Shown: positions 8,361 through 33,178 of the stretch, one piece after another | Layout: each line of letters starts with the position of its first letter | Position numbering within the stretch: the stretch's first letter is position 1 | Virus record (IMG/VR): IMGVR_UViG_3300042879_006196 | Coordinates: 1 to 64,000 of that record | Length of the DNA: 64,000 bases | Strand: one strand, 5' to 3' | The notes under the pieces: generated by a model | The model's database searches: none | Seen by the model: the letters and a program-made list of their open reading frames with translations, nothing else | What the model was told of the DNA's origin: nothing | Made by a program: the position numbers and the translations under genes

Positions 8361-9869
8361 ATGAATAATTTTATTAAAACACCATTCGAAATTACGGACG
8401 CATACAAGCTTTCTCACTGGAGACAATATCCAGAAGGAACCACTGGTGTGTACTCCAACTTTACACCTAGAAAATCACGAAGACCAGGAATTGACAAGTT
8501 TGTTTTCTTTGGAATGCAAGCTTTTTTACAAGAACTTAATGAGCAATTTGACAAAAATTTCTTTTCATTAACAACAGAAGAAGCTGTTCAAAGATTTGAT
8601 GCTTTTTACATTGGATTCTTCGGATTATCAAATCCACACAGCAATGAACAAGTTGGTAAACTTCACCAACTAGGCTATTTGCCGATTAGGATAAAAGCTT
8701 TACCTGAAGGCTCTGTGGTTAATCATAACATTCCTGTGGCAACTATGCAATCTACACACGAAGATTTCTTTTGGTTTACACAATGGATCGAAACTTGGAT
8801 GTCAGATTCAATTTGGAAACCATCCACTTCGGCAACCACTTCTTTTTATTATCGAAAAATATTCAATTTTTACAATAAACTTACATCCGATAATGATTGG
8901 TTTGTAGATTGGCAAGGACATGATTTTTCTATGAGAGGCATGTCAAATGTGCTTGACGCATGTGCTTCTGGAGCAGGACATTTGCTCAGCTTCAAAGGTA
9001 CAGACACTTGCCCTTCACTTTCATGGATTAATGAATATTATCCTGGTGAAAATGGTTTGCTTGGAAGTTCTGTCCCAGCTACAGAACACTCTGTACAAAC
9101 TGCATTTTTGCCTGAAGTAAGTAACGATACAGATGTTTGTGACGAACAGTACACGGCTCATACTCTTGAGCTTTATCCAGAAGGGATTGTATCTCAAGTA
9201 AGTGATGGATATGATTTTTGGCGATTCGTAACTGTCATTTTGCCTAAGTTCAAGGAACAAATCATGTCTAGAGATGGTAAATTTGTCATCAGACCTGATT
9301 CTTCTCCTAAAACTCCTGTTGAGGTTATCATCGGTGACTCAGAGGCTCCAGAAGGCACACCTGAAAACAAAGGATTAATTGAATGTCTGTATGAAATTTT
9401 TGGTGGTACTTTCAATTCAAAAGGCTATAAAGTATTGGATTCGCATATCGGTGCAATTTATGGTGATTCTATCACGCTGGAATACGCTGAAGCTATTCTT
9501 TCTGGTCTTGAAAAGAAAGGATATTCTTCTGACAATATTGTGCTCGGCATAGGGTCATTCACTTATCAATATGTTACAAGAGACACTCATGGCATAGCAA
9601 TTAAAGCCACTGCTGTTTCTTCTGGTCGCGGAGAAGATCAAAAGTGGAGAGCTACTTACAAAGACCCCAAAACAGACAACTCAGGTAAGAAATCAGCTAA
9701 AGGTTTCTTAAGAGTGGATATGTTTGATGGAGATTATGTTCTTTCACAAAATGTCACACAAGAAGAAGAAGGCGGCGCATTGGAACTTGTCTACGAAAAT
9801 AGCAAGATTCTCAGATCGGAATCCTTCGCAGAAGTTCGACAAACACTCTCTGGGTTTTTACCCAACTAA
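8361..9869 (+). CDS. nadV: Nicotinamide phosphoribosyltransferase-like protein (NadV/Namat)
   Basis: TDAYKLSH..QYP, HDF..RG, VPATEHSV, V.D.YD, VIRPDS, IYGDSIT, KDPKTD...KKSAKG. Confidence 0.95.
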   Translation: MNNFIKTPFEITDAYKLSHWRQYPEGTTGVYSNFTPRKSRRPGIDKFVFFGMQAFLQELNEQFDKNFFSLTTEEAVQRFDAFYIGFFGLSNPHSNEQVGKLHQLGYLPIRIKALPEGSVVNHNIPVATMQSTHEDFFWFTQWIETWMSDSIWKPSTSATTSFYYRKIFNFYNKLTSDNDWFVDWQGHDFSMRGMSNVLDACASGAGHLLSFKGTDTCPSLSWINEYYPGENGLLGSSVPATEHSVQTAFLPEVSNDTDVCDEQYTAHTLELYPEGIVSQVSDGYDFWRFVTVILPKFKEQIMSRDGKFVIRPDSSPKTPVEVIIGDSEAPEGTPENKGLIECLYEIFGGTFNSKGYKVLDSHIGAIYGDSITLEYAEAILSGLEKKGYSSDNIVLGIGSFTYQYVTRDTHGIAIKATAVSSGRGEDQKWRATYKDPKTDNSGKKSAKGFLRVDMFDGDYVLSQNVTQEEEGGALELVYENSKILRSESFAEVRQTLSGFLPN

Positions 9870-9913
9870 TTGACATCGGGCGAGAAATCGCCCGATTCTA
9901 CCAATACTATATT

Positions 9914-10732
9914 ATGAAAGCAAACGATCCAAACATACTATCACTGATGCAAATCAAAGACCAACATGGAACTATCATCCCTTGGGAATACAATCTCTTT
10001 CCAGATGGTCAAGTGCAATTTAAAATCAAAAAGAGTTATTTAGAAAATCAAGGACTGAGTTTAGAAGTAAAAGCATCCTTGTGTAATCCAACTATTTTAG
10101 ATTTATTTAATCAACTAAAATTCACTTTACCCTTTTGCTCGTTTAATATAAATTACTACTATGGAGCCAGATGTGATAAAAGTTCAACAGACGAATATAT
10201 TGTTTGCAATGTTGCACAACAACATGCCTCCACTGAGTATAGTACATCGTTTTTAGCACCACATTGTAACAAATTGCTTGAAAGTGATATGTACAAATAT
10301 TACATTCCAGATTGCATCAATTTAAATGATTATCATTTAATTGTCTGCCCTGATGAATCAGCTTTTGAAAGATACGAAGAATTCATTGAAAATCACAATT
10401 GTATGATCTGTGAGAAAGAAAGAGATCAAGATACAGGTAGAATTATTTCACACAAAATTCCAAATTTCTCGCCAAATTTCAGAAAAGTGTTAGTAATTGA
10501 TGATCTTTGTGATGGAGGTAATACCTTTATGTCTGTTGCAGATAGTATGCCTTCAGAAACAGAAAAACATCTATTCATTTTTCATGGTGTATTTAGTAAT
10601 AATGCTTTGGAAAAATTAACAGAAAAATTTGACAAGATATTCGTTTCTAATTCTTTACCAAATTACAAAGAACAAATGGCTAGAATTCCAAATTTTGAAG
10701 ATAAAGTGGTGGTTTTCGATGTCTGGAATTGA
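9914..10732 (+). CDS. Ribose-phosphate pyrophosphokinase-like protein (Adps-like)
   Basis: FPDGQV, AR.DK, PH, PD..A..R, VIDDLCDGGNTF PRPP-binding motif, HG.F. Confidence 0.88.
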   Translation: MKANDPNILSLMQIKDQHGTIIPWEYNLFPDGQVQFKIKKSYLENQGLSLEVKASLCNPTILDLFNQLKFTLPFCSFNINYYYGARCDKSSTDEYIVCNVAQQHASTEYSTSFLAPHCNKLLESDMYKYYIPDCINLNDYHLIVCPDESAFERYEEFIENHNCMICEKERDQDTGRIISHKIPNFSPNFRKVLVIDDLCDGGNTFMSVADSMPSETEKHLFIFHGVFSNNALEKLTEKFDKIFVSNSLPNYKEQMARIPNFEDKVVVFDVWN

Positions 10733-11993: not shown

Positions 11994-12028
11994 TTTTCCA
12001 GGTTTAACAAAAACGGAATATAATCAAT

Positions 12029-13171
12029 ATGAACAATAATTCAAACAATCAACGAAGTGCTCCATCTGCTAAAATTATTAGACTTGGTGAAGGAGCATTT
12101 ATCACTGTCGTTATGGATGGTGAATCTTTGACTTTAAGAGCATCTGACTCTCAAGAATCATTTGACAAAGCATTAGAGGCTTGCAAAGCTGAAGACTGGG
12201 ACTTGCTTTATACTTGCATGAGACCTGTGAAAAAATATGTCTCTGAAATCAAAGGTGTCGAAATTAATGAAAATGGTGTGTTTTACAATGGTGAAATTAT
12301 TAACAACACTTTGTCAAAGAGAATTTTGGACTTTGCATTGTCTGGTCTTGATTCAAAACCATTGTGTAAGTTTTTAGAAAAACTCATGAATAATCCTTCT
12401 AGAAGAGCAGTGAATGAGCTTTACACATTCTTGGAACATCAAAACCTACCAATCACTGATAATGGTAATTTTCTTGCCTATAAGGGTTTGCTTTCAAATT
12501 ATTACTCAATCACCTCTGGTAGTGCACAACTTATCCAAGGAACAGTTAAAAGTGGCAGTATTTACAATGGTATTGGTGAAGTCATTGAAATGAAGCGTAA
12601 TGATGTTGATGATGATAAAGACAGAGGTTGCTCTTATGGGCTACATGCTGGAACTATGGAATATGCAAGTGGTTTTGCACAAGGAAAATGCGTGATTGTT
12701 GAAATTAATCCTGCTGATGTTGTAAGCATTCCTGTAGATTGTAATTTCCAAAAGCTGAGAACATGTAAATATAAGGTGGTTGGAGAATACGAAGCACCTC
12801 TTGTTGAACCACTCTATGCATCAAATTGGATTGAAGATGATATTGGATGTGATTGCACAGATTGTGATTGTGTAGAAACTACTGAGACTACAGAAGCCTC
12901 TGAGATTACCTTAGACACATCTAGCAATCCAATTGAAGTTTTTGCATTCGATACACCTAATTCAAGCTGGATTGATTTTGTTGAATGGGGAGTGAATGAA
13001 GAACTAGATCGTGTATTATCGGTGGTGCTTGGAACTGGTGAATCAATGGATTTCATTCATGTCCCACTGTGGCAATTCAGTCAATTCCAGAAATCTGTTG
13101 AATCAGGACAATCTGCTGGTAAGTTTTTCCACCAATTTATCAAATCAGTGTATGAGCAAATTCAGTATTGA
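12029..13171 (+). CDS. rIIB: rIIB-like protein with C-terminal KTSC-like domain
   Basis: NPS..AV.ELY.FL....LPIT..G.FLAYK, EM.R..V..D....CS.GLH, V.INPADVVSIP.D....K.R.C.Y.V; tail SS.I....VP....F....SAGKFF...IK. Confidence 0.88.
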   Translation: MNNNSNNQRSAPSAKIIRLGEGAFITVVMDGESLTLRASDSQESFDKALEACKAEDWDLLYTCMRPVKKYVSEIKGVEINENGVFYNGEIINNTLSKRILDFALSGLDSKPLCKFLEKLMNNPSRRAVNELYTFLEHQNLPITDNGNFLAYKGLLSNYYSITSGSAQLIQGTVKSGSIYNGIGEVIEMKRNDVDDDKDRGCSYGLHAGTMEYASGFAQGKCVIVEINPADVVSIPVDCNFQKLRTCKYKVVGEYEAPLVEPLYASNWIEDDIGCDCTDCDCVETTETTEASEITLDTSSNPIEVFAFDTPNSSWIDFVEWGVNEELDRVLSVVLGTGESMDFIHVPLWQFSQFQKSVESGQSAGKFFHQFIKSVYEQIQY

Positions 13172-13235
13172 AAATGAAATCGGGCAAAATCTGCCCGATT
13201 TTTTCCAGCTTTAACATAACCTGATTATTATAGAT

Positions 13236-13628
13236 ATGAAAGAATTCGGAAGTTTAGTAAATTACATCAAAACTGTGGCTACCAAAGGTATGCCAGCACC
13301 CCAAGTGGGAATGGGCGCAACCCTTCTTTGCTACACAGATAGACACGCTTGCACTGTCACAAAAGTATTCGAATTGAATAAAAAACTTTATGTTGAGATA
13401 CAGCAAGATTTTGCCTTTCGTATAGATGGAAATGGCATGAGTGAATGTCAAAAATATGATTTCAAACCTAATCCAAATGGATGCACTTACACTTATAGAT
13501 GGTGTGAAAAAAAGCAAAGATGGCTTAAAGTGTTCTTCAACGAAGAAACTAACAGATACAATTTAATTCAAAATGCATTTGGTTTATCTATTGGTAAAAG
13601 AGATGAATATTATGATTTTTGTTTTTAA
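13236..13628 (+). CDS. Phage hypothetical protein
   Basis: ORF starts directly at the repeated promoter. Confidence 0.75.
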   Translation: MKEFGSLVNYIKTVATKGMPAPQVGMGATLLCYTDRHACTVTKVFELNKKLYVEIQQDFAFRIDGNGMSECQKYDFKPNPNGCTYTYRWCEKKQRWLKVFFNEETNRYNLIQNAFGLSIGKRDEYYDFCF

Positions 13629-13665
13629 TTTAGCGTATAATAGATTGTAATTGAAAATTAAATAT

Positions 13666-13963
13666 CGGGGTGTGGTGAAATCGGTAGACACAACAGACTT
13701 GAAGTAAATTTGAGTGCTTGCATGACCCTTTTAGTGCGAGTAGAACCAGTCAAACTCGGTGAAGGCTTTGAAATGCTAATACCGAGCCAAGCCTAGAAAT
13801 AGGAAGGTGTAGAGACTAGACGGCTGGGCGATAAAGGAAATAAAAAAATCGCAAGGTATAGTCCAGAGTACAAACAAGAAAAATCTTGGTGGTGAAAACC
13901 ATAGTGCTACGAAAATCTGTCGGTAGCAATACTGTGAGGGTTCAAGTCCCTCTGCCCCGACCA
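13666..13963 (+). tRNA. trnL: tRNA-Leu(UAA) interrupted by a group I intron (exons 13666-13700 and 13912-13963)
   Basis: Joined exons give the stem-loop ACAGA-CT-TAA-AA-TCTGT, a long variable arm, GGTTCAAGTCC T-arm and CCA end. Confidence 0.92.
13701..13911 (+). ncRNA. Group I intron (211 nt) in the tRNA-Leu anticodon
   Basis: Inserted after U34 and ends in G; P/Q/R/S-like elements AAACTCGGTGAA, AATACCGAGCC, GTGTAGAGACTAGACGG, AAGGTATAGTCC. Confidence 0.9.
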
Positions 13964-13967
13964 ATCA

Positions 13968-14042
13968 GGGCTTATAGCTTAATGGTAAAGCGCTCGGCTC
14001 ATAACCGAAGGAGTGTAGGTTCAATCCCTACTGAGCCCACCA
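13968..14042 (+). tRNA. tRNA with CAU anticodon (Ile2 or elongator Met)
   Basis: GGGCTTA/TGAGCCC acceptor stem, CTCATAA loop, GGTTCAATCC, CCA. Confidence 0.9.
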
Positions 14043-14111
14043 ATCACACAATCTTAATTCAATAATTTGCCCGATTTTTTCCAGATTTAACACAATCTGA
14101 TTATAATAAAA

Positions 14112-14477
14112 ATGACATTTTTTGAAAACTTAATGATAGCACATTTTATTGGAGATTGGATTCTCCAACCTTCATCAATGGGAATACAAAAATCTTCCAA
14201 TTGGAAAATTAGATTTTTGCATTGCTTAATTTACACCGCTTGTTTTTTCTGGCTTAACTGGATTGCCTGTTTGTGGATTTTTATAACCCATTTTATCATT
14301 GACTCGTATATGCCTCTATTTTGGTTTAGAAAATTAAGAGGTGATTTTAAAACCATTGAAGAATTTAAAACTTCTTTTAACACACCTGCTGGCTTTTTTA
14401 TAAATGTTGTACTTGATCAAATTTTTCACATTATCACATTTTTGCCTGTAATTTTGTCCGTAAATTACAATAAATAA
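14112..14477 (+). CDS. DUF3307-like membrane protein
   Basis: AHFIGDW.LQ, LHC.IY, THFIID, DQ.FH motifs. Confidence 0.8.
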   Translation: MTFFENLMIAHFIGDWILQPSSMGIQKSSNWKIRFLHCLIYTACFFWLNWIACLWIFITHFIIDSYMPLFWFRKLRGDFKTIEEFKTSFNTPAGFFINVVLDQIFHIITFLPVILSVNYNK

Positions 14478-14478
14478 A

Positions 14479-17400
14479 ATGATTAATACAGATTGTGTGA
14501 AAATATATGAGGAAGAATATCAGGTGAGCAAGCAGGTGAGCCATCAGCAGGTGATGGATCGGGTGATGACTCTAGTGTGGTATCAGATTCGCCACGAGGT
14601 AGAGGATCAGGTATTAAGTGAGGTGTGGCTTAAGGTGTGGTATGATTAATACAGATTGTGTGGAAGTAAAAAAACAGGCACATAATCAGCTAAGGAATCA
14701 GGTGTTGAATCACGTGCGGTATCAGGTGTTGAATCACGTGCGGTATCAGGTGCTGAATCAGGTGTGGTATCTGGGGAGGGATCAGGTGTGGGTTAAGGTG
14801 TTTAGATGATTAATACAGATTGTGTGGAGATAAAAGATTGGGGTCATATAGAGGATCACGTGGAATATCAAACTTCGATTCAGGTATCAAATGAGGTGTG
14901 GAAGCAGGTGTATCTTCATCTGAGGAATCGAATGAAGAAAGAGATGTATTTCTACTTAAGGTGGGAGGTGTGGTTTAAGGTGTGGTTTGATTAATACAGA
15001 TTGTGTGGAGATAAAAGATTGGGGTCATATATTGGATCATGTGGAATATCAAATTTCGACTCAGGTGTCAAGTGAGGTGTGGAAGCAGGTGTATTCGCAG
15101 GTGAGAAATCAAACGATGGATGAAATGTATTTCTACGAGAGAAAACAGGTGTGGCTTAAGGTGTGGTTTGATTAATACAGATTGTGTGGAGATGTATGAG
15201 ATTAAAGATCAGGTGTGGGATAAGGTGGAGTATGAGGTTTCGATTCAAGTGAGGGATCAGGTGTGGGGTTATTTGTATTCCCTCATAAGGTACGAGGTGA
15301 GGCTTAAGGTGTGGTTTGATTAATACAGATTGTGTGGAGATAAAAGCGATTAGATATCAGGAGAGAAAACAGGTATGTGATCAGGTGAGAAATCAGGTGG
15401 GGAATGAGGTGAGGAATGAGGTGTGGCATCAGGTAGAGTATCAGGTGTGGGCAAAGGTGTGGTGGTCAGGTGAGGGGAATCACTTGAGTGATCGGATTTT
15501 CAAATGATTAATACAGATTGTTTAAAGGTGAAGGTTGAAGATCAGGTGCAGAATCAGGTGTATAATCTCCTAAGGATTCATGTGAAGCTCCAGTTGGACT
15601 ATCAGGTGTGGGATCGTTTGTTTTGGGAAATGCGGTGGAAGGTGTTCAAATGATTAATACAGATTGTGTGGAGATATTTGAGATTGAAAGTAAGGCGTAT
15701 GATCAGGTTATGGAACTGGTCTATTATCAGGTTTGGGAACAGGGGTGGTCGAGGGTAAGAGTGTATATGTGTCGTGAGGTGTTCAGATGATTAATACAGA
15801 TTGTGTGGAGATATTTAACATTAAAGATCGAGTGGGGGAGCAGGTGATATTTGAGGTGAGGATTAAGGTGGTGGATAAGGTGTTGTGGAAGGTGTATGAT
15901 TGGGCGAGGGATCAGGTAAAGGGTAAGGTAAGAGTGAAGGTGTTCAGATGATTAATACAGATTGTGTGGAAGTGAAGAATCAGGTGAAGAATCAAATGAG
16001 GAATCATGTACAGTATCATGTGCAGACTCAGGTGTATGAAAAGGTAGATTATCAGGTGTGGGATAAGGTGTGGTATCTAATGAGGAATAAGGTGATAAAT
16101 GATTGATATAGATTGTGTGGAGATATTTGAGATTAGAGATCGGGTGAAAAATCAGGTGGTGGATAAGGTGTTGTGGAAGGTGTGGTATCTGGCGAGGAAT
16201 CAGGTGAGGGGTCAGGTGTATCTAAAGGTGTGGGATAAGGTGTGTGATCAAGTTGTGTGTCAGGTGTGGCTTAAGGTGCTCAAATGATTAATACAGATTG
16301 TATGGTAGTGAAGAATCAGGTGAAGAATCAGGTGTTGGATCAGGTGAGTTATCAGGTGTGGGATCAGGTGCTGTATCAGATGTGGCATCAGGTGTATCAT
16401 CACGTGAGGGATCAGGTGTGGTATCAAGTGGAGGATCAGGTGTATGATAAGGTGTGGCATCCTGTGAAATATCGGGTAAAGGGTCAGGTGTTCGATGATT
16501 AATACAGATTGTTTGAAGGTGAAACATCAATTTAAGAAAGTGGAATCTCAGGTGTGGGATCAGGTGATAGATGATTAATACAGATTGTGTTGGAGTAAAT
16601 CATAAAGTATTTTTTGAGAATGTGTCCTTTGAATTGTGGCATCAGACGAGGAATAATCTAAGGTGGCAGGTGAGGAACCAGGTGTGGTTTAAGGTGTATC
16701 TTCAGGTATGGCATAAGGTGTTCAGATGATTAATACAGATTGTGTGGAGATATTTGAGAATCGAAATCAGGTGATAACTCAGTTGAGTGATCAGGTGAGT
16801 TCGAATCTGGTGCATAGTCAGGTGTGGTTTAAGGTGTTCAGATGATTAATACAGATTGTGTGGAGATATTTGAGAATCTAAATCGGGTAGAGGGTAAGGT
16901 GAGGCATCAGGCAAGAGATCAGGTGAGTAATCATGTGTGGTATAAGTTGCGGGATAAGGTGTGGTGGGAGATGTGGTGCTACGTAAGAGTGAAGGCGTGG
17001 AGGAAAATGTTCGAATGATTAATACAGATTGTGTGGAGATGTATGATAATATTGAGTTATGGTGGAAGGTGACAGATAAAGTGTATGCTGTGGCGAGGAG
17101 TCAGGTGCAGAATCAGGTATTGTTTCATACAAAGACTCATCCTAAGGTGAAACTGAAGGTGAAAGATCAGGTATATTATGAGGTGCTCAGATGATTAATA
17201 CAGATTGTGTGGAGATATTTGAGATTGAAGATCAGGGTTGGGATCAGGTGAGTGATCAGGTGAGTGATCAGGTGGAGTATCAGGTGTGGGAGCAGGTGTG
17301 GTGGAAGGTGTGGGATCAGGTGTGGTATCAGGTGTGGTATCAGGTGTGGTATCTGGCGTGGGATAAGGCGTGGGATGAGGTGATAAATGATTAATACAGA

Positions 17401-18082
17401 TTGTGTGGAGATGTATGAGATTGAAAATCAGGTGTGGGATCAGGTGAGTGATCAGGTGGAGCATCAAGTGTGGTATCAAGTGGAGCATCCTTTGTATGCT
17501 CAGGCGAGGGATCAAGTGATGAACCAGGTGTGGCTCAAGGTGTTCAGATGATTAATACAGATTGTGTTGAGATATTTGAGATTGAAGATCAGGCGTTGGA
17601 TCAGGTGAGTGATCAGGTGGAGTGGGAGGTGTGGCATCATGTGGAATATAAGGTGTGGTATAATGTGAGTAATCAGGTGAAAAACCCAGTGTGGTTTAAG
17701 GTGTTCGTATGATTAATACAGATTGTGTGGATGTGAAGGTTGAGGATCAGATTTGGCGTCAGGTGAGTTATCAGGTGGAGTGGGATACGCGGCATCATGT
17801 GGAGGTGTGGTATAATGTGAGTAAGCAGGTGAAAAACCCAGTGTGGTTTAAGGTGTTCGTATGATTAATACAGATTGTGTGGGTGTGAAGGTTGAGGATC
17901 AGATTTGGTGTCAAGTGGAAAATCAGGTGGAGTGTCAGTTGTCGTACTGGGTATGTGATGAGGTGAGATTTGATGCGGTTGATACAGTTTGGCATGAAGT
18001 GGGGTATAAGTTGTATGATCACATGGTTTTTCCAGGTTTAACATTACCCGATTATACTGGATATGATTCAAAAAAAAGATGA
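14479..18082 (+). repeat. MINTDCV micro-ORF array, block 1 (22 units by manual count)
   Basis: Repeat (A/T)TGATTAATACAGATTGTGTG at 14479, 14642, 14806, 14987, 15168, 15316, 15504, 15650, 15787, 15948, 16099, 16284, 16495, 16571, 16726, 16842, 17015, 17191, 17387, 17548, 17709, 17861; each opens a QVW-rich ORF that ends in the next repeat, except the last (17861), which runs on into the rIIA promoter. Confidence 0.95.
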
Positions 18083-20204
18083 CTTTGTAATCGACATGAA
18101 TTCCTCATTTGCACAACGAAAGTTCTCAGTTAAAACTGAGAATCTTGCTCATTTGTTCGACATAATGAGAAATTACATTTACTCAAACAAAATTCTTGCA
18201 GTTATTAGAGAGTACTCTACAAATGCAATTGATGCAAACATAAAAAATAACTTTGCATCTAGACCAATTTCAATCACATTGCCTACGTACTTCGAACCTA
18301 CATTTTCTGTAAGAGACTATGGCGCAGGTTTGAGCGAAGAAGAAATTTTTGAAATTTATTCTAGTTATGGAGAATCCACTAAAAGAGAAAGCAATGAATA
18401 CATTGGTAATCTTGGTATTGGAAGCAAATCTGGCTTCGCTTATTCTGATTCATTTACCATTACTTCATTCCATAATGGAACAAAAAAAATCTATGAAGCT
18501 TTCATTGATGAATCACAAATTGGTACAATTGCAAAAATTCATGAAGAAAAAAATGACAGTGAAAGCGGATTGTTAATATCTATTTCTGTTAATAAAAATG
18601 ACATCAATTATTTCAAAATTGAAGCAGAAAAGTTTTTCATGTGGTGGGATGTTACACCTGAATTTATTGGTGTCCAACCTGATTTTATGTCTCAATTTTC
18701 AACATACAAAAATGAATATTCTTCTAGTATTTGTCAAATCTTTTCAAAAAGATATTCTGAAACTTCAATTTCAGTTAAAATGGGTAATATTCTTTATCCA
18801 GTTACAAATTTTGATAAAATTGATTGTGATTGGTTGAAAGGTTTGTCTGTTGTCATTAAAGTAGGGCTTGGAGAAGTAAGTCACTCCGCTTCAAGAGAAT
18901 CTCTTGAAATGAATAGTTTAACTGTAGATACAATTAATACATATCTTCAAAAAATAAGAGAGACACTTACAGCACATTTCCTGAAGCAAATTGATGATTG
19001 CAAAACACCTTGGGGCGCAATCATAGAATATCATAATATGTCTTTTTTCGCTCAACAAACGATTGGTAAAAAAATATCTTGGAAAGGTAAAACTCTATCA
19101 ACGCAGTTACCGTCTAGTTTTCAATATTGTTTCTTTGATACATACTACAAAAAATGGAAGAAAAATGTAACTGTTCGATACTCCGCTGGAGACAGTGTGG
19201 CTTTTATTTTGAATGATGGAGGTTTTCCAGCGTCACAAACTAGAGCAAGGCTTCTAGCCGCACGTGATAAACTCAACAAGACAAACCTTTACACAAGTAT
19301 CATTTACATAAAAGGTTCAATCTCAGACACAAATGATTTACTAAAAAGTGACGAATTGATTGGATCAAATTATGTCAAGCTTTCAACGGTATTAGCAATT
19401 CCTACTAAAAATAAAAGTAAAAAAGCTGTTGCTGGAAAGATTCTTGAATGGAATTCCACAACAACATTTCCATACTCTACTTGCTGGGACTCTGTAGATA
19501 TACCAGACAGTGATGAAGAAATGATTTATGTTGAGATTGAAAAATTTGTGCCTGTCATGAGCAATTTTAATAACAGTAGCCGAGCGAGGTTTTATGATCT
19601 TAAAAATTGTTTGAATTTGATTCGTGATGTGGATAATAAAGTTTTCAAAATTTACGGAGTAAAAGCTGGTCAAAAATTACCTAAAAATTTTATTAGTCTG
19701 CATGATTACATGGAAAGGATGATTGTAAAATTCATTAAAACAGACGATTTTGTTGATAGTTATGTTCAACATGCAATTAGTCAAGTTAATTTAAGAACAT
19801 CATTCTTGAGTAGTGCAAGAACTCTAATGCAAACATTTGATACTGATATAATGAACAAATTCAATGATGTAAAATGCGAAAAGCTCAAGGCAATGTTTTA
19901 CTTTACTAAGCCTATGATGAATAAATTTTATCATCTTTTGACGAACATAAAAAACATTTCATTTCATTTTCCTAAAATAACCACTGCCTTGTCAGAGTTG
20001 GATGATTTGAAAGACAAAAGATTACAAGTTTGGAATCAAAACAAAAATTATTGTTTGGAAAATTATCCAATGATTGAATTTCATTATTCTCCAAACACTA
20101 TGGCTTTGACAAAAATGTTTGAATATGTAAATTCAATTCACGCAACACAAAACACTGAGAGGCACAAAAAGCCAATCAAAATTTCATCAAAAATTAATGT
20201 TTGA
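18063..20204 (+). CDS. rIIA: rIIA-like protein (N-terminal GHKL ATPase)
   Basis: Y.NK..AVIRE...NA.DA, F.VRDYG.GLS, YG.STKR.SN..IG.LG.GSKS.FAYSDSF, S.SRESL. Confidence 0.9.
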   Translation: MIQKKDDFVIDMNSSFAQRKFSVKTENLAHLFDIMRNYIYSNKILAVIREYSTNAIDANIKNNFASRPISITLPTYFEPTFSVRDYGAGLSEEEIFEIYSSYGESTKRESNEYIGNLGIGSKSGFAYSDSFTITSFHNGTKKIYEAFIDESQIGTIAKIHEEKNDSESGLLISISVNKNDINYFKIEAEKFFMWWDVTPEFIGVQPDFMSQFSTYKNEYSSSICQIFSKRYSETSISVKMGNILYPVTNFDKIDCDWLKGLSVVIKVGLGEVSHSASRESLEMNSLTVDTINTYLQKIRETLTAHFLKQIDDCKTPWGAIIEYHNMSFFAQQTIGKKISWKGKTLSTQLPSSFQYCFFDTYYKKWKKNVTVRYSAGDSVAFILNDGGFPASQTRARLLAARDKLNKTNLYTSIIYIKGSISDTNDLLKSDELIGSNYVKLSTVLAIPTKNKSKKAVAGKILEWNSTTTFPYSTCWDSVDIPDSDEEMIYVEIEKFVPVMSNFNNSSRARFYDLKNCLNLIRDVDNKVFKIYGVKAGQKLPKNFISLHDYMERMIVKFIKTDDFVDSYVQHAISQVNLRTSFLSSARTLMQTFDTDIMNKFNDVKCEKLKAMFYFTKPMMNKFYHLLTNIKNISFHFPKITTALSELDDLKDKRLQVWNQNKNYCLENYPMIEFHYSPNTMALTKMFEYVNSIHATQNTERHKKPIKISSKINV

Positions 20205-20474
20205 ATGACTTAGTTACCAACATGCAGAAAATTTAATCATGAAGTTTTTCAATAAATTCTTCTCACTGATTCAGATTGTGTGCATGTTGGTAATTTTGCC
20301 TTTTGCATTCTTTTACTTAACTATTTTAGATTTTTTGGATTACCAAAAATCAAAAAAAATGTAACTATTCTTGAATAGTTATCGTAAATAAAATTGTATT
20401 ATAGATTGAATCTTTTATAGAATTAGTGTGTAATACATTTTTTCCAGGTTTAACAAAACAGGATTATAATTAAC

Positions 20475-21569
20475 ATGGTTGAACAATTAACACAAGAACA
20501 AATAGACAGTTTTCCACGATTCAGAGATAAGTGGACAAACATCGGACGATCCACTGGCAGAGCTGACCTTTCAGTTGTAAAGCCAATTATCAACAAAATT
20601 TATGAGCAGAAAGATCTTGAAGCTCCAAAGTACTTCTTCCATTTTGGCAATCCGATGGATATGCTCAATGGACGAGTGATTTGCAGAATGCTCAACAGTT
20701 TTGATCCAAAAAATTATCAGAAAGATACAATCAATCTTGATAATGACTTCATGCGTATCTTTGATATGACCTATCAAATGTATTCTGAACAATTCGATTT
20801 GAAATCTGCACATGGTGTGGATTGGAGCGAAGACATCAAGCTTGGAATGCTTTCACATTGCCAAAATCTTTTGAAGTCTAAAAACATGCTTGCATACAGA
20901 AAAGAACTGGAAACTGATGTTCTTTATGGCAACCATGAAGCACACAATCTGGCTTACTACGAATTCTGGGACGAATGGTTCAAATTTGACTTCTTAAAGC
21001 CAATGCATGCATTTTTTGAACTCGCTAACCATCTTGGATGGTGGTGTGCTGAAAAAGAAGTGGCATATTTGTCAGACAAACCTGATGAAGTGCACGTGGA
21101 TGAACTAGGTAGACTTCACAACACCGCAGGACCAGCTGTCAAATACAGAGATGAATTCTCAATCTACTGCATCGAAAGCCATAGCGTTCCTGCCCACGTG
21201 GTAGAGGCACCAGACACAATTACAGTTGAAGAAATTGATTCTCAAACAAACGCTGAAGTTAGAAGAATTTTTATGACACAATTTGGATTCGAAAGATATT
21301 TCCAAGAAGCAAATTGTCAAATTATTGACCAGGATTTTACTGTTGTTGATTATAACAAACAAGAATCTATGCCAAGAATGCTCGTAAAAACTAAATTTGA
21401 TGATGTGTATTTGATCGGAACTGATGGCTCCACAAATCGTGTTTACTACATGCCAATTGGTAATGTAACCACAATCAAAGAAAGATTGGGTGTGAACATC
21501 AAAACCTGTAAGCAAGCACATGAAATCATTTCAGGTGTGAAAGAATCAAATATCATTTCGCAAAGCTAA
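20475..21569 (+). CDS. DUF6745-like protein
   Basis: N-terminal LT.EQ....R.KW..IG.ST..AD; C-terminal LH...GPA..Y.D.......VP..VV..P..IT...I....NAEVRR..M...G.ERY; recognised from memory. Confidence 0.75.
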   Translation: MVEQLTQEQIDSFPRFRDKWTNIGRSTGRADLSVVKPIINKIYEQKDLEAPKYFFHFGNPMDMLNGRVICRMLNSFDPKNYQKDTINLDNDFMRIFDMTYQMYSEQFDLKSAHGVDWSEDIKLGMLSHCQNLLKSKNMLAYRKELETDVLYGNHEAHNLAYYEFWDEWFKFDFLKPMHAFFELANHLGWWCAEKEVAYLSDKPDEVHVDELGRLHNTAGPAVKYRDEFSIYCIESHSVPAHVVEAPDTITVEEIDSQTNAEVRRIFMTQFGFERYFQEANCQIIDQDFTVVDYNKQESMPRMLVKTKFDDVYLIGTDGSTNRVYYMPIGNVTTIKERLGVNIKTCKQAHEIISGVKESNIISQS

Positions 21570-21599: not shown

Positions 21600-22037
21600 A
21601 TGACAAAAACCATTAAAAAAACCAAAGCTCAGAATAACCTTTCTGAAATTCAACAATTCGCCACTAAATCTAGCAACGATTGTCGCATCATTGACAAAAT
21701 TGAAGTGGGGCAGTGCGTGAGACAAGGGGATGTTTACATCACCCGAATCGAAAACTTCTCGAAAGTGGGATGCACTAAAGCAGGGCAAAAACTTGCTCCT
21801 GGTGACACCCCTGGCTCAAGACATTTTGTAGATGCACACGTTACTACTTGGCAAAATGAAAACACTGGAAAAGTTGTGCGAAATGAAGTGGGATTCACAT
21901 GTAAAGGATTGCTCCTTGAATGCGATAGAAGCTTCAAGGTCACACACCCTGAACATGCCCATTTCTATCTCCCTGCTGGCTCTTATGAAGTGAGCTATCA
22001 AGTTAACACCAAAGAAATGGCTAGAGTACTTGATTAA
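21600..22037 (+). CDS. Conserved small partner of DUF6745-type genes
   Basis: RQGDV, LA.G...G.RH, .THPEH....LP.G.YEV..Q, terminal RV.D. Confidence 0.7.
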   Translation: MTKTIKKTKAQNNLSEIQQFATKSSNDCRIIDKIEVGQCVRQGDVYITRIENFSKVGCTKAGQKLAPGDTPGSRHFVDAHVTTWQNENTGKVVRNEVGFTCKGLLLECDRSFKVTHPEHAHFYLPAGSYEVSYQVNTKEMARVLD

Positions 22038-22078
22038 AATCTAAAAACAACACACTCACATCTTTTCCAAAAACACCG

Positions 22079-22113
22079 AAGAGGACAATTCAAATATTGT
22101 CCTCTTTATTTTT
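22079..22113 (+). terminator. Intrinsic terminator closing the DUF6745 operon
   Basis: AAGAGGACAAT...ATTGTCCTCTT followed by a T-run. Confidence 0.8.
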
Positions 22114-22164
22114 CAATTTTTGCCCGATTTTTTCCAGATTTAACAATTATTATTTATATTAAAA

Positions 22165-25100
22165 ATGATCAACACAGATTGTGCGGAAGTAAATGAAAAA
22201 GTGAATCCTATACAGCATCATGCAATTAATCAAGTACAGTATGAATTGGAGATTGAAGTTTGGGATATGGTAAAATGTAAGGTATCAGGTGAGGTAAGTT
22301 GTCAGGTGTTCGATTGATTAATACAGATTGTGTGAAAGTGGAACATCCAGTGTGGACTCAAGTGCGAGATCAGCTGTTCTCTCAGGTGCAGTGGAAGGTG
22401 TGCCATAACGTGCTGACTCAGGTGGAGTGGAAGATGCATGATCAGGTGTGGTGGAAGGTGTTCGATTGATTAATACAGATTGTGTTAAGGTGTGGGAGAA
22501 AAAGGATAAGGTGAGGGGTCAGGTGTGTTATCAAGTGATGGGTCAGGTAGAAGATCAGGTGCATGGTCCTTTGTTTCGGGAAATGTGGTGGCAGGTGTGG
22601 TTTGAGGTTTTCAAATGATAAATACAGATTGTGTGAAGGTGAGGGAGAAAAAGATTCAGGAGTGCGATCAGGTGTATGAGCAGGTGTATGAGCAGGTGTA
22701 TTGTCAGGTGAGTAATCATGTGGAGTATCAGGTGTGGGAGCAGGTGTGGTGCAAGGTATGTAAAAAAGTGTGGTTTAAGGTCTATAATGATTAATACAGA
22801 TTGTGTGGAGGTGAGGGAGAAAAAGAATCAGGCGACTGAGCAGGTGTATGAGCAGGTGTGTGAGCAGGTGGGGTGGAATGTGGAGTATCAGGTGTGGGAG
22901 CAGGTAGAAGATCAGGTGTGGGATCGTTTGTTTTGGTACTCGCGCTTTGAGGTGTTCAAATGATTAATACAGATTGTGTGGTGAAGAAGCAGGTGTGGGA
23001 GTATGTAGAAAGTCAGGTGTTGTGGAAGGTGTATGATTGGGTGAGTGAGCAGGTGAATTGGCAAGTGGAGATTCAGTTGTGGGATAAGCTGTTTGCTCAG
23101 GAAAGACATCAGGTACGGCATCAGGTAAAAGTGAAGGTGTTCAAATGATTAATACAGATTGTGTGGAAGTTGAAAGCCATGTGAAGAATCAGGGGTTTGA
23201 TCAGGTGTGGAATCAGGTGGAACTTCAGGTGTGGGGTCAGGTGTGGGATTATTTGTGGTGGAAGGTGTGGCTTGAGGTGTTCGAATGATTAATACAGATT
23301 GTGTGTATGATTGGGTGAGTGGTGATTGGGTGAGTGATCAGGTGGAGCTTCATGTGAGGAATCAAGTGCGGGGTCAGGTGTGGGGTCAGGTGTGGGATAA
23401 GGTGCGGGATCAGGTGGAGTATCAGGTGTGGGAGCAGGTGTGGTTTGAGGTGCTCAGATGATTAATACAGATTGTGTGGAAGATCAGGTGGAGTATCAGG
23501 TGGAGTATCAGGTGGAGCTTCAGAAGTGGGGTCAGGTGTGGGATGAGGTGTGGTGGAAGGTGTGGCTTGAGGTAAGTGATCAAGTAAGGGATCAGGTGTT
23601 TTATAAGGTGTGGTTTGAGGTGTTCTATGATTAATACAGATTATGTGGTAAATAAGCAGGTGTGGTGGCATGCAGAAGATCAGGTGTTTTCGAATATGCG
23701 TGATTGGGTGTGGTGGCATGTAGAAGATCAGGTGTATGATCAGGTAAGGATATTGGTGCAGATTCATGTGTGGGATCAGGTGGGGGGTCAGGTGTATGAC
23801 CAGGTGTTCTATGATTAATACAGATTGTGTGAAGGTAAAGAAGCAGGTGTGGGAGCATGTAGAAAATCAGGTGTGGTTTGAGGTGTATGATTGGGTGAGT
23901 GAGCAGGTGAATTGGCAAGTGGAGATTCAGTTGTGGGATGAGGTGTTGTATCAGGTGTTGTGGATTAAGGTGTTTAGATGATTAATACAGATTGTGTGAA
24001 GATAAAAAATCAAATGTATGATCAGGTGGAGTGGAAGGTGTATGATCAGGAGTGGTGGTATCGGGTGAGCATTCTAGTGTTGGATCAGTTGGAGTATAAG
24101 GTGTGTAATCAGGTGTGGTGGGAGGTGTATAAGGGTGTGTGGCAGGTGTTAAAATGATTAATACAGATTGTGTGGAAGATCAGGTGTGGGATCAGGTGGA
24201 GCTTCAGGTGTGTAATCATGTGTGGTATCATGTGAGGTATCAGGCGTCTCAGCAGTTGGGGGTTAAGGTGAGAGGTCAGGTGAAATACAAGGTGAGGTAT
24301 CATGTGAGAGATCAAGTGGTGTGTGAGGTGTGGTATGATTAATACAGATTGTGTCAAGGTGAGGGAGCAAGATAAGGTGTGGGATCAGGTGTGGTGGAAG
24401 GTGCTCAAATGATTAAAACAGATATTGTGAAAGTGAAACGTGAAAATCAAATGTGTTTTAAGATTTATCACAATTTGGAACAACAAGTGCACTGGAATAT
24501 ACTTTATCTGGTGAAAGCTCAAACGAAAAATAGACTTTTTGCACAGAAGAATCTGCTGGGTAGGATTGTAGATCGCGAGATCAAAAGGCGCTCAAATGAT
24601 TAATACAGATTGTGTGGTTGTGTGGAATCAGGTGAGACATCAGGTACGGCATCAGGTAAAAGTGAAGGTGTTCAAATGATTAATACAGATTGTGTGGAGG
24701 TATGTGAGATTAATCATGTATGGACTCAGGTGAATTATAAGGTGACACATCAGGTGAAGAGAGTGGCATCTCAGGTTCACTCTGAGGTGAGACATCAGGT
24801 ACGGCATCAGGTGTGGTGTGAGGTAGAGGATCAGGTGGAGTGGAATGTGTGGAATAAGGTGCTGGGTCAGGTGTGGAATCAGGTGAGGATTCAGGTGTGG
24901 TATGATTAATACAGATTGTGTGGAAGATCAGGTGTGGGATCAGGTGGAGCTTCAGGTGTGTAATCAGGTGAGGTATCAGGTGAGGTATCAGGTGAGGGTT
25001 CAGGTGTGTGATAAGGTGAGGGGGAGGTGGTGCTACGTAAGAGTGAAGGTGTTGTTTAAGGTGTTCAGATGATTAATACAGATTGTGTGGAAGATCAGGT

Positions 25101-27430
25101 GTGGGATCAGGTGGAGCTTCAGGTGTGTAATCAGGCGAGGTATCAGGTGAGGTATCAGGTGAGGGAGGAGGTGTCTGATAAGGTGAGGGGTCAGGTGAGA
25201 TATAAGGTGAGGCATCATGTGAGAGATCAGGTGGTGTGTGAGGTGTTCTATGATTAATACAGATTGTGTAAAGGTGAGGGAGCAAGATAAGGTGTGGAAT
25301 CAGGTGCAGGATCATGTGTGGTTTGAGTTGTGGTATAAGGTGCGGGATCAGGTGAAGATTGAGGTGAGGTTTCAGGTGTGGGTTCAGGTGTTCAAATGAT
25401 AAATACAGATTGTGTGGAAGTGGAAGATGATTCAAATTTGACTAAAATGAAACATGTGTTGACTCATGTGCGCGATAGGGTGGAGGTTAGGGTGTGGTTT
25501 GCGGTGTCGGCTCTTGTGGAATGTCGGTATTGGTATGAAGTAAGAGATAATGTGTTCTAATGATTAATACAGATTGTGTGGAAGTGAAACATCCAGTGTG
25601 GGGTGAGGTGAGGGAACAGGCAAGGGTTACAATAGTTTATCATTTGTGGCATCAGGTGTGGTACCAGGTTGCGTGGGATGTAGAGGATCAGGTGTTGGAT
25701 CAGGTGTGGAATCAGGTGTTCTAATGATTAATACAGATTGTGTGGTAGCGAAGAATCTGGTGCGGAATCAAATGAGGAATCATGTACAGTATCAGGTGCA
25801 GACTCAGGTGTATGAAAAGGTAGATTATCAGGTGTGGGATAAGGTGCGATGGAAGGTGTATGCTCAGGTGCGGGATAAGGTGTTTAGATGATTAATACAG
25901 ATTGTGTGGAAGTGAGGGAGCGGGATCAGGCGTGGAAAAAAGTGCAGAATCATGTGTGGAATCAGGTGCAGGATCATGTGTGGTTTGAGTTGTGGTATAA
26001 GGTGCGGGATCAGGTGAAGATTGAGGTGTGGAATAGGGTGTGGTGGAAGGTGTTCAAATGATAAATACAGATTGTGTGAAAGATCAGGTGTGGAATCAGG
26101 TGTGGAATAAGGTGTTGAATCAGGCGTGGGGTCAGGTGGAGTATCAGGTGGAGATTCAGGTGTGGGATCAGGTATGGATTCAGGTATGGAAGGTGTGTTG
26201 TAAAATACAGAATCAGGTGTGGCATGATTAATACAGATTGTGTGGATGTATGTGATAATAATTATCAGTTTTGGTATGTAGTGTCTCAGGTTCAGGTTGA
26301 GGCAAATCAGGTGGAGATTCAGGTGTTTAGACAAGTGAGGAAACTAACGTGGGCTCAGGTAAGATATCAGGTGACACACAAGGTAATTGATCAGGTGTGG
26401 TATGATTAATACAGATTGTGTGAAAGATCAGGTGTGGAATAAGGCGCTGGATCAGAAGTGGGGTCAGGTGAGGAAACAGGTGTGTGAGCATGTATGGGAT
26501 CAGGTGTGGAATAAGGTGTGGGATCGTTTGTTTTGGGTAAGATTCAAGGTGAAGTATCAGGTGTGGCATGATTAATACAGATTGTGTGAAAGTGAGTGAG
26601 TGTGATAAGGTGCAGGATCAGGTGAGACAGCAGATGCGGGATCAGGTGAAAGATCAGGCGTTGAAGGGGTTTATTCAGGTATATTGGCAGGTGAGTAATC
26701 AGGTGGAGTATAAGGTGTGGGAGAAGGTGATCAAACAGGTACGACTTCAGGTGTGGTATGATTAATACAGATTGTGTGAAAGAGCAGGTGTGGAATAAGG
26801 TGCTGGGTCAGGTGAGATACAAGGTGAGGTATCAGGTAGAGGATAAGGTGGAGTGGAAGGTGTTAAATCAGGTATATGATAAGGTGTTTAAATTGAATTA
26901 TAAGGTGTTGAAAAAGGTGTTCAGATGATTAATACAGATTGTATAGAGATATTTGAGATTGAAGATCAGGCGTTGGATCAGGTGAGTGATCAGGTGGAGA
27001 TGGAGGTGAGGTATCAGGTGAGATATAAGGTGAGGCATCATGTGAGAGATCAGGTGTGGTGTGAGGTGTTCTATGATTAATACAGATTGTATAGAGATAT
27101 TTGAGATTGAAGATCAGGCGTTGGATCAGGTGAGTGATCAGGTGGAGATGGAGGTGTGGCATCATGTGTTGGATCAAGTTGTGGGTGAGGTGTGGTATCA
27201 GGTGTGGTATCAGGTGAATTATCAGGTGTGGTATGATTAATACAGATTGTGTGAAAGTGAAACGTGAAGATCAATTGTGTTTTAAGATTTATTATAATTT
27301 CGATCATAAAATGCACTGGGAGATGATGTATCAAGCGCATTACAAACCCCAATATCAAGCAGAATATTATTTATGCTGTAATATTTACAATAAAGGATGG
27401 AAGCAGATAACAGAGCAGATATTCAAATGA
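22165..27430 (+). repeat. MINTDCV micro-ORF array, block 2 (32 units by manual count)
   Basis: Repeats from 22165 to 27233 at about 75-230 bp spacing; first ATG lies directly behind the promoter at about 22126-22160. Confidence 0.95.
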
Positions 27431-27968
27431 TGAATCACTTCAAAGATTCCTTTTTTATGAAACATCCCACTGGACTCCGCGACAAAAAATGATCCCTCTT
27501 TAATGCAGAATAAAACACCTTTTCATCACCCTTTTTGTACCCCACACCTGACCAAAAACAAGGCTTCACACACACTAATTTATATGCCTTTCTGTTCATT
27601 TTTTACTCTATGAATTCCTATATGAACACACAATCTGAAACACGATCTCTATATCCCTAATACAATTAAGATACAATTAAAAAATCACATATTCATTATG
27701 CATTTTTTTCACCTTCCACCACCTCAAATGATAAAAAAAAAATTACACAAGATATATATGATTTTTTTCAATTTTTTCTACTCTATGAAAAATTAATGAG
27801 ATTTTTTGTCAAATCATTTTTCATCTCTGAAAAAATCATATCATTTTCTCTTTCTATTTTTTTCTGATTTTCGCCCGATTTTTCCTCATCAATTTTGCCC
27901 GATTTTTTCCAGTTTTAACATTTTCTTTTTATAATGTTTCCAAGACAAATTTCGTAGAATGTAGTGGT

Positions 27969-30900: not shown

Positions 30901-33178
30901 GTGTGAAAGTGGAAAATCAAGTGTTTAATGAGGTGCAGAATCAGGTGTGGTGGAAGGTACATGCTCAGGTGTTCCGTAAGCTGAGAGGTAAGGAATGGTT
31001 GGCTGAGTTGTGGCAACAGAAAACATATGTTGTCACGTATCAGAATCAGGTTCTACTTAAAGTAAAACTTCAGGTGTGGTATGATTAATACAGATTGTGT
31101 GGAATTGTATAATGAGGTTTCGAATCAAGTGAGGGATCAGGCGTGGGCTCATGGACTTCAGGCGTGGTGGCAAGTGAGGAATAAGATAAGGTATCAGCCT
31201 TGGCATCAAATTAGTAGGAAGGTGAGAAAACAGGTATGGTATGAGGTGTGGTATGATTAATACAGATTGTGTGAAAGTGTATAATGAGGTGCAGAATCAA
31301 GTGAGGGATCATGTGTGGATTAATACAGATTGTGTTAATACAGATTATGTTGAATTGTATTATGAGGTTTCGATTCAAGTGAGGGATCAGGTGTGGTATC
31401 AGGCGTGGGATAAGGTTTGGGATCAAGTGAGGAATAAGATGAAGTATCAGGCTTGGCATCAAATTAGTAGGAAGGTTAGAAAACAGGTATGGTTTGAGGT
31501 GTAGTATGATTAATACAGATTTTGTGAAAGTGGAAATTTGGGTGTGGGATCAGCTAAAGAATCATGTGAAAAATGAATTTAGTAGTGAAGTGTGGCAACA
31601 GGTAAATGTTAGGATGTGCGATCAGGTGTGGGAGAAGGTGATCAGACAGGTACGATATAAGGTGTGGTATGATTAATACAGATTGTGTGAAGATATATAA
31701 TAGTAAAAATCCAATGATTGATCATATGTGGGATCTAGTGACAACCCAATCGTTTTATGAGTTTTTGAATTATGTGCTTTTCAAGGTAAAGAGACAGATA
31801 TGGAATAAGGTGTGGCTTGAGGTGTTCAAATGATTAATACAGATTGTGTGGAATTGAGCCATCACGCGCTGGATCAAGTGAGCAACAATACGCGGTATCA
31901 GCTGGAGTGGAAGGTATGGGCTCATGTGGATCATGCGGTAAAACAGATTGGTTTGCCGTTTAAGGTAAAGTTGCAGGTATGGAATAAGGTGATAAATGAT
32001 TAATACAGATTGTGTAAGGAATAAGATGAAGCAGAAGCACTTGGATTTTAGACATCAAACGCAAAAGTATGTATGGGCTAACTTTATATTAGGGCTTGAG
32101 TATCGTGTGAGACTTAATGTCTGTAGTAAGCTTACGAGTCAGATATATTATCAGGTGAGTGTATATATTTATAATAAGGTGTATGATGATTAATACAGAT
32201 TGTGTGCAGATAAATGATGATGAATATCAGGTAAAAAGTCAGAAGTATAAACATATATCTAATGAGATGTATCTTGAGGTGTGGTATGAGATGTCTCAAA
32301 AAGTATTATATTTTTCTGTGCGTGAGTTGTGCATTAAGGTGTTTAGATGATTAAAATAGATTGTGTGGAGATTAAGGTTCAACATCACATTTGTCTTGTG
32401 CACATTCATGTTTCTAATCAGGCTTATCAGGTGTGGGACAAGAATTGTAAAGGAGTGTGTTTTCCAAGGCGTCAGTTGTGGTTTGAGGTGTTTAGATGAT
32501 TAAAACAAATTGTGTGGAGATTAAGGTTCAAGATCAGATTTGGTTTGTGGATCATTATTTGTCCAATGAAATGTGGTGTCAGGCTTTGAACAATACAGTG
32601 CTTTGGGCAATTCCTAATGTGGTAATTTATAATGTGCGCGATAAAGCTTGGATCAAGGTGTTTAGATGATTAACACAGATTGTGTGAGAGTGGACAGTCT
32701 TGAAATAAAGCATGAAGTTGTTTTTGAGATGAGGAATAAAGTGTGGAATCAAATATATTATCATGTGTCTTGTAAGGTTTGGAGGCTGGTAAAGCTTCAG
32801 GTGTTTGGGTGTTCAGATGATTAATACAGATCGTGTGGATTTGAAAAATCATGATAATCTACATTATCATCTTACTAATTCACCAAGATGGTATGTGTGG
32901 GATCAAATTAATCTTCAAGTGAGGAATCATGTTTCTAAGGTAAGGTTTAAGTTGTGGGATGAGATGTTAAAATGATTAATACAGACTGTGTGAATATAAG
33001 GAATGGTGAAAAAATCCAAATGGATTTGCAGAACCATGTGGATATAGTTGATATCCATTCTGTTCGAAATTCTATTTATTATCAAGTAAGAAGATTAAGT
33101 AATGTAACTTTGATAAGATATAAATTACAAAAGATTTTTTTTGATTATTTGTCTTATGATTTATGTGGGATATTGTGA
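27969..33178 (+). repeat. MINTDCV micro-ORF array, block 3 (30 units by manual count)
   Basis: Repeats from 27969 to 32972; promoter at about 27903-27935; first and last units are the most diverged. Confidence 0.95.

Follow-up and report, generated by a model that had tools for sequence, protein, structure and literature searches.

The window analysed here comprises the first 64,000 nucleotides (nt) of the 347,392-bp virus record IMGVR_UViG_3300042879_006196, whose completeness is rated at 99%. Its source is a freshwater jumbo phage, and the region belongs to the early, host-takeover part of the genome, which is made of autonomous gene cassettes. All sizeable open reading frames (ORFs) of the window are on the plus strand, as are all features located below unless stated otherwise, and the standard genetic code suffices for its genes, with no alternative code required. 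We focus on the rII locus, at which rIIB (12029–13171; 380 amino acids (aa)) precedes rIIA (18063–20204; 713 aa) and the two genes lie 4.9 kb apart. The interval holds a 130-aa ORF, two tRNA genes, a gene for a DUF3307 membrane protein and the first block of a micro-gene array; rIIA is followed by a 41-aa ORF and by genes for a DUF6745 protein and its 145-aa partner. An original prediction, made from this sequence without database searches, had listed rIIB, tRNAs, DUF3307, array, rIIA and DUF6745, with 22 micro-genes between rIIB and rIIA. That order is correct and 22 repeat copies were counted in the interval, but the 130-aa ORF, an intron within one tRNA gene and the 41-aa ORF had been missed.

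Both rII genes are genuine orthologues, as predicted. rIIA matches PHROG 612 over residues 1–690 (E 1.6e-103) and HATPase_c_3 (8.7e-10), and rIIB matches PHROG 609 over residues 12–257 (E 7e-60). The GHKL family is defined by its N, G1 and G2 boxes, and the corresponding rIIA residues (E50, N54, A55 and D57; D85, G87 and G89; G115, G118 and G120) are invariant in 12 relatives; rIIA is predicted to carry an intact N-terminal GHKL ATPase. Scans with PADLOC and NCBIfam gave nothing useful except GHKL-type matches for rIIA. The two proteins co-occur in every relative examined.

The C terminus of rIIB is a true KTSC domain. The protein consists of a core (residues 7–270), a disordered Asp/Cys-rich linker (271–301), which is also Asp/Cys-rich but of variable length across the clade, and the KTSC domain (302–380; nt 12932–13168). 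An AlphaFold2 model built with a 44-homologue alignment has a mean predicted local distance difference test score (pLDDT) of 84.5, with core and tail confident and the linker below 50. A word search with the tail alone returned only a fragment of the window's own rIIB, and the assignment was resolved instead through full-length homologues. A word-index search found about 2,500 of these, the best ~40 being 46–66% identical over the full length and many bearing precomputed KTSC matches; PF26926 (Phage_T4_rIIB) is precomputed on 120 of the 120 homologues listed. Within the 44-homologue alignment S312, W314, S362, A363 and G364 of the tail are invariant or nearly so, and 38 of the 44 sequences match Pfam KTSC (PF13619) at E ≤ 0.01 (best 5.3e-12), whereas the window's rIIB itself reaches 15 bits (E 0.021), under the gathering cut-off of 25. 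The original prediction had called the tail KTSC-like and had named profile comparison as a check, and a profile made from 19 tails does match the KTSC proteins 7x8c (E 4e-8) and 4rgi (E 5.9e-4) in the PDB, as well as the C-terminal domain of HerA (residues 631–692) from the anti-phage SIR2–HerA complex (8wiv/8wld; E 8.9e-5, fold Z 8.9). The predicted tail fold superposes on 4rgi with Z 11.1 (root-mean-square deviation (rmsd) 2.3, 70 of 71 residues aligned) and on 7x8c with Z 10.5 (rmsd 2.1, 68 of 69 aligned), against Z 5.4 for the best unrelated chain. A phmmer search of the PDB with rIIB gave no significant match.

In tblastn searches the rIIB proteins of GenBank phages do not align beyond about residue 265, so the rIIB–KTSC fusion is known solely from metagenomes, and we found no paper that ties rIIB to KTSC as a fusion. 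KTSC is treated as a nucleic-acid-binding domain, and free-standing KTSC proteins occur in jumbo phages (PMC7824862, PMC9503650); the rIIB tail is predicted to bind nucleic acid. Within the core, residues ~120–257 (nt 12380–12800) show weak serial matches to ADP-ribosyltransferase (ART) folds: Arr at Z 5.2, 4.7 and 4.6, diphtheria toxin at 4.3, a PE-like toxin at 3.4 and tankyrase at 3.1. Pfam scans retrieved no ART family for the core even at E 10, and we keep a possible ART-like fold as a lead only.

The arrangement of the two genes was compared with that in metagenomic rII neighbourhoods and contigs that we fetched (L002–L038), some of which are short. IMG/VR scans with rIIA and with DUF6745 yielded no relatives, and a scan with rIIB yielded one distant locus. 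As predicted, rIIA followed by rIIB is the usual order: the genes are adjacent and in this order in all three isolated phages sampled and in L002, L009, L021 and L022. Adjacent genes in the reverse order occur in the lineages of L016 and L011 (rIIB ~64% identical) and in L019, L023 and L024, five lineages whose rIIB is 46–65% identical to that of the window. L013 likewise has rIIB first, but with 6.4 kb and seven genes before rIIA, the first of them a homologue of the 130-aa ORF. The nearest relatives thus carry adjacent genes with rIIB first, so the reversed order appears to be an inherited trait of the clade and not peculiar to this phage, while the separation of the two genes seems to have happened more than once. 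Because KTSC tails are found in both order classes, the fusion is probably older than the flip. Relatives have both the order and the tail; the only feature that sets this phage's species apart is the inserted block, together with the fast-changing array that it contains.

The array-bearing strains compared with the window are L025 (a 231.7-kb contig), a 33.9-kb contig and L030 together with L038; a 27.9-kb contig is also among the three assemblies that share the locus. It is scarcely credible that the split between rIIB and rIIA is an assembly artefact of the repeats. Repeat arrays often break or mis-join assemblies, and the contig of L015, whose rIIB is 96% identical, ends just after that gene; yet three other, independent assemblies of the same species (the 231.7-, 33.9- and 27.9-kb contigs) have the same gene order and the same block boundaries. 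Since all three array-bearing strains share these boundaries, no intermediate state was found.

Each rII gene is preceded by a copy of a promoter-like cassette. The cassettes have a nearly identical motif, TTCCAGNTTTAAC, followed by TATAAT; TTCCAGNTTTAAC is present 80 times on the plus strand and not once on the minus strand, almost always within the first 68 kb, and its hexamers score 9–10 out of 12 against a sigma-70-like promoter. In about 60 copies an ATG lies exactly 33 nt downstream of the motif start, 4 nt past TATAAT, and none of the 80 cassette starts is preceded by a Shine–Dalgarno (SD)-like sequence. Because the ATG is fixed at +33 and no SD is present, the simplest reading is that cassette mRNAs are leaderless, and the cassettes would form a set of leaderless early-gene units across the genome. 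Of the 80 cassettes, 20 have a strictly defined hairpin with a T-run immediately upstream, compared with 3% of random positions; others have hairpins further upstream. The cassette spacer, ACACAATCTG, reads as the reverse complement of CAGATTGTGT, the core of the micro-gene repeat, and some 20 promoters have this core upstream of them as an inverted repeat.

The rIIB cassette (11995–12024) consists of TTTCCA, 18 nt and TATAAT, from which 4 nt separate the ATG, and the rIIA cassette (18029–18058) has TATACT as its −10 element. Further cassettes precede the 130-aa ORF (13202–13231, fused to a hairpin with a T-run at 13177–13201 after rIIB), DUF3307 (14078–14107) and DUF6745 (20441–20470). The claim that every element of the locus has its own promoter holds for these five genes and for block 2 of the array, but not for block 1, which begins 1 nt after the DUF3307 stop codon and has the DUF3307 cassette as the sole one upstream of it, nor for the tRNAs, before which the full motif is absent. 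A plus-strand scan for terminators found none between the DUF3307 promoter and 22078 except for two weak 5-bp stems inside rIIA. rIIA would be made from its own leaderless transcript and may also be made by read-through of a DUF3307–array transcript. In nine relative lineages, both rII genes follow variants of the cassette, and throughout the clade the cassettes of the rII genes leave no space for a leader. As each gene has its own cassette, rIIA and rIIB need not adjoin to be co-expressed.

The genes of the inserted block differ in their history. The 130-aa ORF (13236–13628), to which no function was assigned, has its own cassette. It has copies that are 93–95% identical downstream of rIIA in L011, L012 and L016, although the rIIB of these relatives is ~64% and their rIIA ~40% identical, and a copy that is 49% identical right after rIIB in L013. 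The excess of identity over that of the rII genes suggests a recent exchange of this single cassette. A tRNA-Leu(UAA) gene (13666–13963) follows, interrupted in its anticodon loop by a 211-nt group I intron (13701–13911). aragorn -i calls a tRNA-Leu(taa) with a 211-nt intron, the manually spliced form folds as an 87-nt type II tRNA, and the last nucleotide is U in the 5′ exon and G in the intron. Rfam Intron_gpI matches the insert over the full model length at 38.3 bits (E 6e-7), under the gathering cut-off of 50. The intron also holds 76 nt that are 91% identical to the uncultured marine phage contig KT997847, and this was the sole match when the region was compared with GenBank phages by megablast. 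A tRNA-Met(CAT) gene (13968–14042) and the DUF3307 membrane protein gene (14112–14477; 121 aa; PF11750 2.8e-11, 44 bits against a cut-off of 23; PHROG 2470) complete the interval upstream of the array.

The array is built on a 20-nt repeat that occurs 84 times in the window against a chance expectation of 0.03. Block 1 (14479–18082) contains 22 of these copies (at 14479–17861) and 22 micro-ORFs of 27–73 aa that start with MINTDCV and have overlapping stop and start codons. Block 2 with its promoter cassette (22131–27430) has 32 units, and block 3 (27907–33178) includes a promoter motif and, after a first unit at 27969 that is degenerate, 30 further units, giving 84 units in the window, or 85 if the degenerate one is counted. 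The gap between blocks 2 and 3 (27430–27900) contains a short minus-strand ORF that is also called in relatives, two partial upstream parts of the cassette and one promoter motif. An exact-pattern search for the repeat in IMG/VR gave six single matches, which on inspection were chance occurrences or unrelated N termini.

The micro-gene units look translated and would be fast-evolving genes, because of their spacing, their open ATG frame, the AGGTG that precedes their starts and their predicted helix. The alternative is that the 22 units are an array of DNA or RNA repeats, such as regulator binding sites, such that rIIB and rIIA are split by non-coding repeats. In its favour are the relation of the 20-mer, through its 10-nt core, to the promoter spacer and to some 20 promoters; the internal 12-nt period of the units, which is strongest at the DNA level; and a ratio of non-synonymous to synonymous substitutions (dN/dS) of 0.79 between orthologous units of the window and L025. 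These units are 93.7% identical, about half of all units have no orthologue, and the neighbouring genes are 97.5–99.3% identical with dN/dS of 0.06–0.55. Against the alternative, unit spacing is divisible by 3 in just 1 of 81 cases in the window, in none of the 51 of L025 and in 2 of the 69 of a third strain, and indels stay in frame although their lengths are not multiples of 12. Only 3 of 81 units are closed in the ATG frame, as opposed to 79–80 of 81 in the other two frames, an SD-like AGGTG precedes 70 of 84 micro-gene starts, and AlphaFold2 predicts an array unit with confidence (pLDDT 85) as a single long helix with valine at every fourth residue. We regard a non-coding array as very improbable. 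Translated micro-genes, the reading we prefer, differ in copy number across three strains (84, 72 and 54), in which the flanking genes are 98–100% identical, and arrays are absent from all relatives outside this species-level lineage.

How the array came to lie between the rII genes depends on the relation between its blocks. The units are old and have diverged (60–86% identical), and their best matches are scattered across all blocks, suggesting that the three blocks share one unit pool, a finding that does not decide which sequence entered which. The same scatter, with matches that are not collinear, led us to reject block 1 as a segmental duplication of block 2. The original prediction proposed instead that an rIIA–DUF6745 segment, which would include the 145-aa gene, had been inserted into a once continuous array, and that rII, DUF6745 and the peptides form one membrane or anti-abortive-infection module. 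This model is consistent with the shared unit pool, including nearest pairs that join different blocks (15948/25724 at 0.83; 17548 with 26925 and 27073 at 0.80), and with the form of the last unit of block 1 (17861–18082; 73 aa). As predicted, that unit has no closing repeat; it reads across the promoter-like site of rIIA and stops 20 nt into that gene, an arrangement conserved in two other strains, L025 and L038. The unit is, however, array-like through its usual C-terminal motif and lacks only the stop codon that the next repeat supplies, so that no unit is split at this junction. Nor is one split at the right junction after the 145-aa gene, which is a clean terminator-like hairpin and promoter cassette and holds no stray 3′ fragment of a unit. 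Block 1 is moreover tied to the DUF3307 promoter. Because the nearest array-free relatives have adjacent rIIB and rIIA in this order, insertion between the two genes is simpler and takes fewer steps than invasion of an array by rIIA. In the insertion that we favour, the 4.9-kb block of the 130-aa ORF, two tRNAs, DUF3307 and 22 micro-genes would have entered between adjacent rIIB and rIIA, and the last micro-ORF, by ending just inside rIIA, could couple its translation to that of rIIA.

The module half of the same model turns on the genes downstream of rIIA. Between rIIA and DUF6745 is a strongly hydrophobic 41-aa ORF (20239–20364) that lacks its own cassette and is conserved in L025 save for one substitution. 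The DUF6745 gene (20475–21569; 364 aa; PF20530 3.6e-28, 98.7 bits against a cut-off of 27) and the gene for its 145-aa partner (21600–22037) have no cassette separating them, and a terminator-like hairpin (22078–22107) follows. DUF6745 is rare in GenBank phages (2 records). Atlas searches placed the 145-aa protein in unnamed viral clusters only and retrieved DUF6745 clusters, some fused to leucine-rich repeats in cyanobacteria; phmmer searches of the PDB gave no significant match for either protein, and our literature search found no paper with 'DUF6745'. The pair lies just downstream of rIIA in the window and just upstream of rIIB in L011 and L012 (54% identity for DUF6745 and 55% for its partner between L011 and the window), so the predicted linkage to rII holds in two lineages and in two arrangements, and DUF3307 and the 41-aa ORF are both membrane proteins, as a membrane module would have it. 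In the fetched rII flanks of about seven other lineages (L002, L009, L013, L019, L021, L022, L023 and L024), some on short contigs, DUF6745 and its partner are absent, and the arrays belong to one species. A single functional module of rII, DUF6745 and the peptides is therefore only weakly indicated by these gene neighbourhoods, and the model as a whole, array invasion included, is in our view unlikely.

Genes of NAD+ metabolism are also found near rII. In most relatives (L002, L009, L013, L015, L021 and L022) a NAMPT gene is located no more than 10 kb from rIIB, and at 8361–10732 of the window NAMPT is paired with a phosphoribosyl pyrophosphate-synthetase-like gene, which may make up an NAD+ reconstitution pair. 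Macro, PARP, NUDIX and NADAR genes are likewise found near rII in relatives.

Promoter-early stem-loop (PeSL) cassettes mediate gene shuffling in T4-type phages (PMC2839356, PMC4122927), and PeSL mini-circles have been documented in the same phages (PMC2839356). The latter raise a different account of the two DUF6745 arrangements, in which rIIB, rIIA, DUF6745 and the 145-aa gene are a mobile four-gene group that is excised as a circle between cassettes and re-inserted elsewhere. The orders in L011 (DUF6745, 145 aa, rIIB, rIIA) and in the window (rIIB … rIIA, DUF6745, 145 aa) are circular permutations of one another, and cassette repeats are present in both lineages. But the account is backed by two lineages only, circle junctions were not seen, additional events are required for the 4.9-kb insert and the arrays, and inherited synteny with independent shuffling fits the same data; we hold it to be distinctly unlikely. 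More of a long shot is a joint reading in which the rIIB KTSC tail would mimic or compete with the KTSC of HerA and, with the NAD+ salvage genes, disarm an NAD+-depleting defence of the SIR2–HerA type, the rIIB–rIIA–DUF6745–partner set would be a mobile counter-defence group, and the array would be a diversifying repertoire of helical peptides. The possible ART-like fold of the rIIB core would accompany this reading as a still weaker lead.

The split between rIIB and rIIA seems best explained by ordinary cassette shuffling. Repeated cassette ends would permit PeSL-like recombination, with reordering, insertion and deletion of genes, and the differences in gene order among relatives fit such recombination without proving it. 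rIIA, as a GHKL ATPase, and rIIB would act jointly as an early counter-defence pair, by analogy with T4. Taken as a whole, an account that combines independent rII cassettes, their shuffling, a KTSC-tailed rIIB and a counter-defence pair is the best explanation of the locus, and we consider it probable.

Several points weigh against this account. Both gene orders occur in the wider clade, so the direction of the rearrangement cannot be rooted, and neither a recombination intermediate nor a mini-circle was seen. The cassettes are putative promoters; a canonical start at or just past the A, with 4 nt between TATAAT and ATG, leaves leaderless initiation plausible but unproven; and the PeSL analogy is incomplete, because just a quarter of the motifs have a strict upstream hairpin. 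The sources searched contain no functional test of a KTSC domain. Co-folding of rIIA with rIIB residues 7–270 gives weak support for a complex, with an interface score (ipSAE) of 0.37 (runs 0.37, 0.32 and 0.39) against 0.00 for the best of three controls, agreement between runs in at least 60% of contacts and partner pLDDT of at least 74. Of 80 solved complexes, 58 reach the mark for a complex, as do 2 of 110 mismatched pairs, but the passing scores of 0.60 or less, the range of the rII pair, come from 7 of the 80 solved complexes and from both of the mismatched pairs.

The rII genes are among the oldest loci in genetics. Across one large environmental clade they form independent cassettes whose order flips and which can be kilobases apart, and therefore neither adjacency nor an operon is required for the pair. 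The subfamily of rIIB proteins with a KTSC domain, a domain shared with the solved SIR2–HerA complex, provides a testable handle on rIIB. Within a few kilobases, genes that are 98–100% identical between strains stand beside arrays that vary in copy number and sequence, a juxtaposition that marks where selection acts.

Four known systems other than T4 rII resemble parts of the locus. Like PeSLs, the cassettes are short, highly repeated, putative sigma-70-like promoters in one orientation before small early genes, in part of the copies fused to a terminator-like hairpin, at sites where gene content and order differ between close relatives. Unlike PeSLs, they have another sequence, an ATG at a constant 4 nt from the −10 element, no SD, and a strict upstream hairpin in 20 of 80 copies. 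The rIIB tail resembles 7x8c, 4rgi and the HerA of SIR2–HerA (8wiv, 8wld) in both profile and predicted fold, but in the phage a disordered linker rich in Asp and Cys joins the domain to an rIIB core, and the window sequence falls below the Pfam cut-off. The tRNA-Leu intron shares its position in the anticodon loop, between U34 and A35, and its U and G ends with the tRNA-Leu(UAA) intron of cyanobacteria and plastids, from which it differs in being phage-encoded and in scoring below the Rfam gathering cut-off. Lineage-specific expansions are known in jumbo phages, such as the ~35 zinc-ribbon copies of Bacillus phage G (PMC7824862). The array likewise expands one small protein family many-fold in one phage genome, but as 54–84 tandem, putatively translationally coupled single-helix copies with valine at every fourth residue and a number that varies between strains.

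In T4, rIIA and rIIB are required for growth on hosts that carry RexAB, and rIIB also triggers a CARD/gasdermin defence (PMC10312443). The window's proteins fit the same two rII families, and its rIIA keeps the GHKL ATPase boxes. The locus departs from that of T4 in that rIIB comes first, 4.9 kb separate the two genes, each is preceded by a promoter-like cassette of its own, and rIIB carries an additional linker and KTSC domain.

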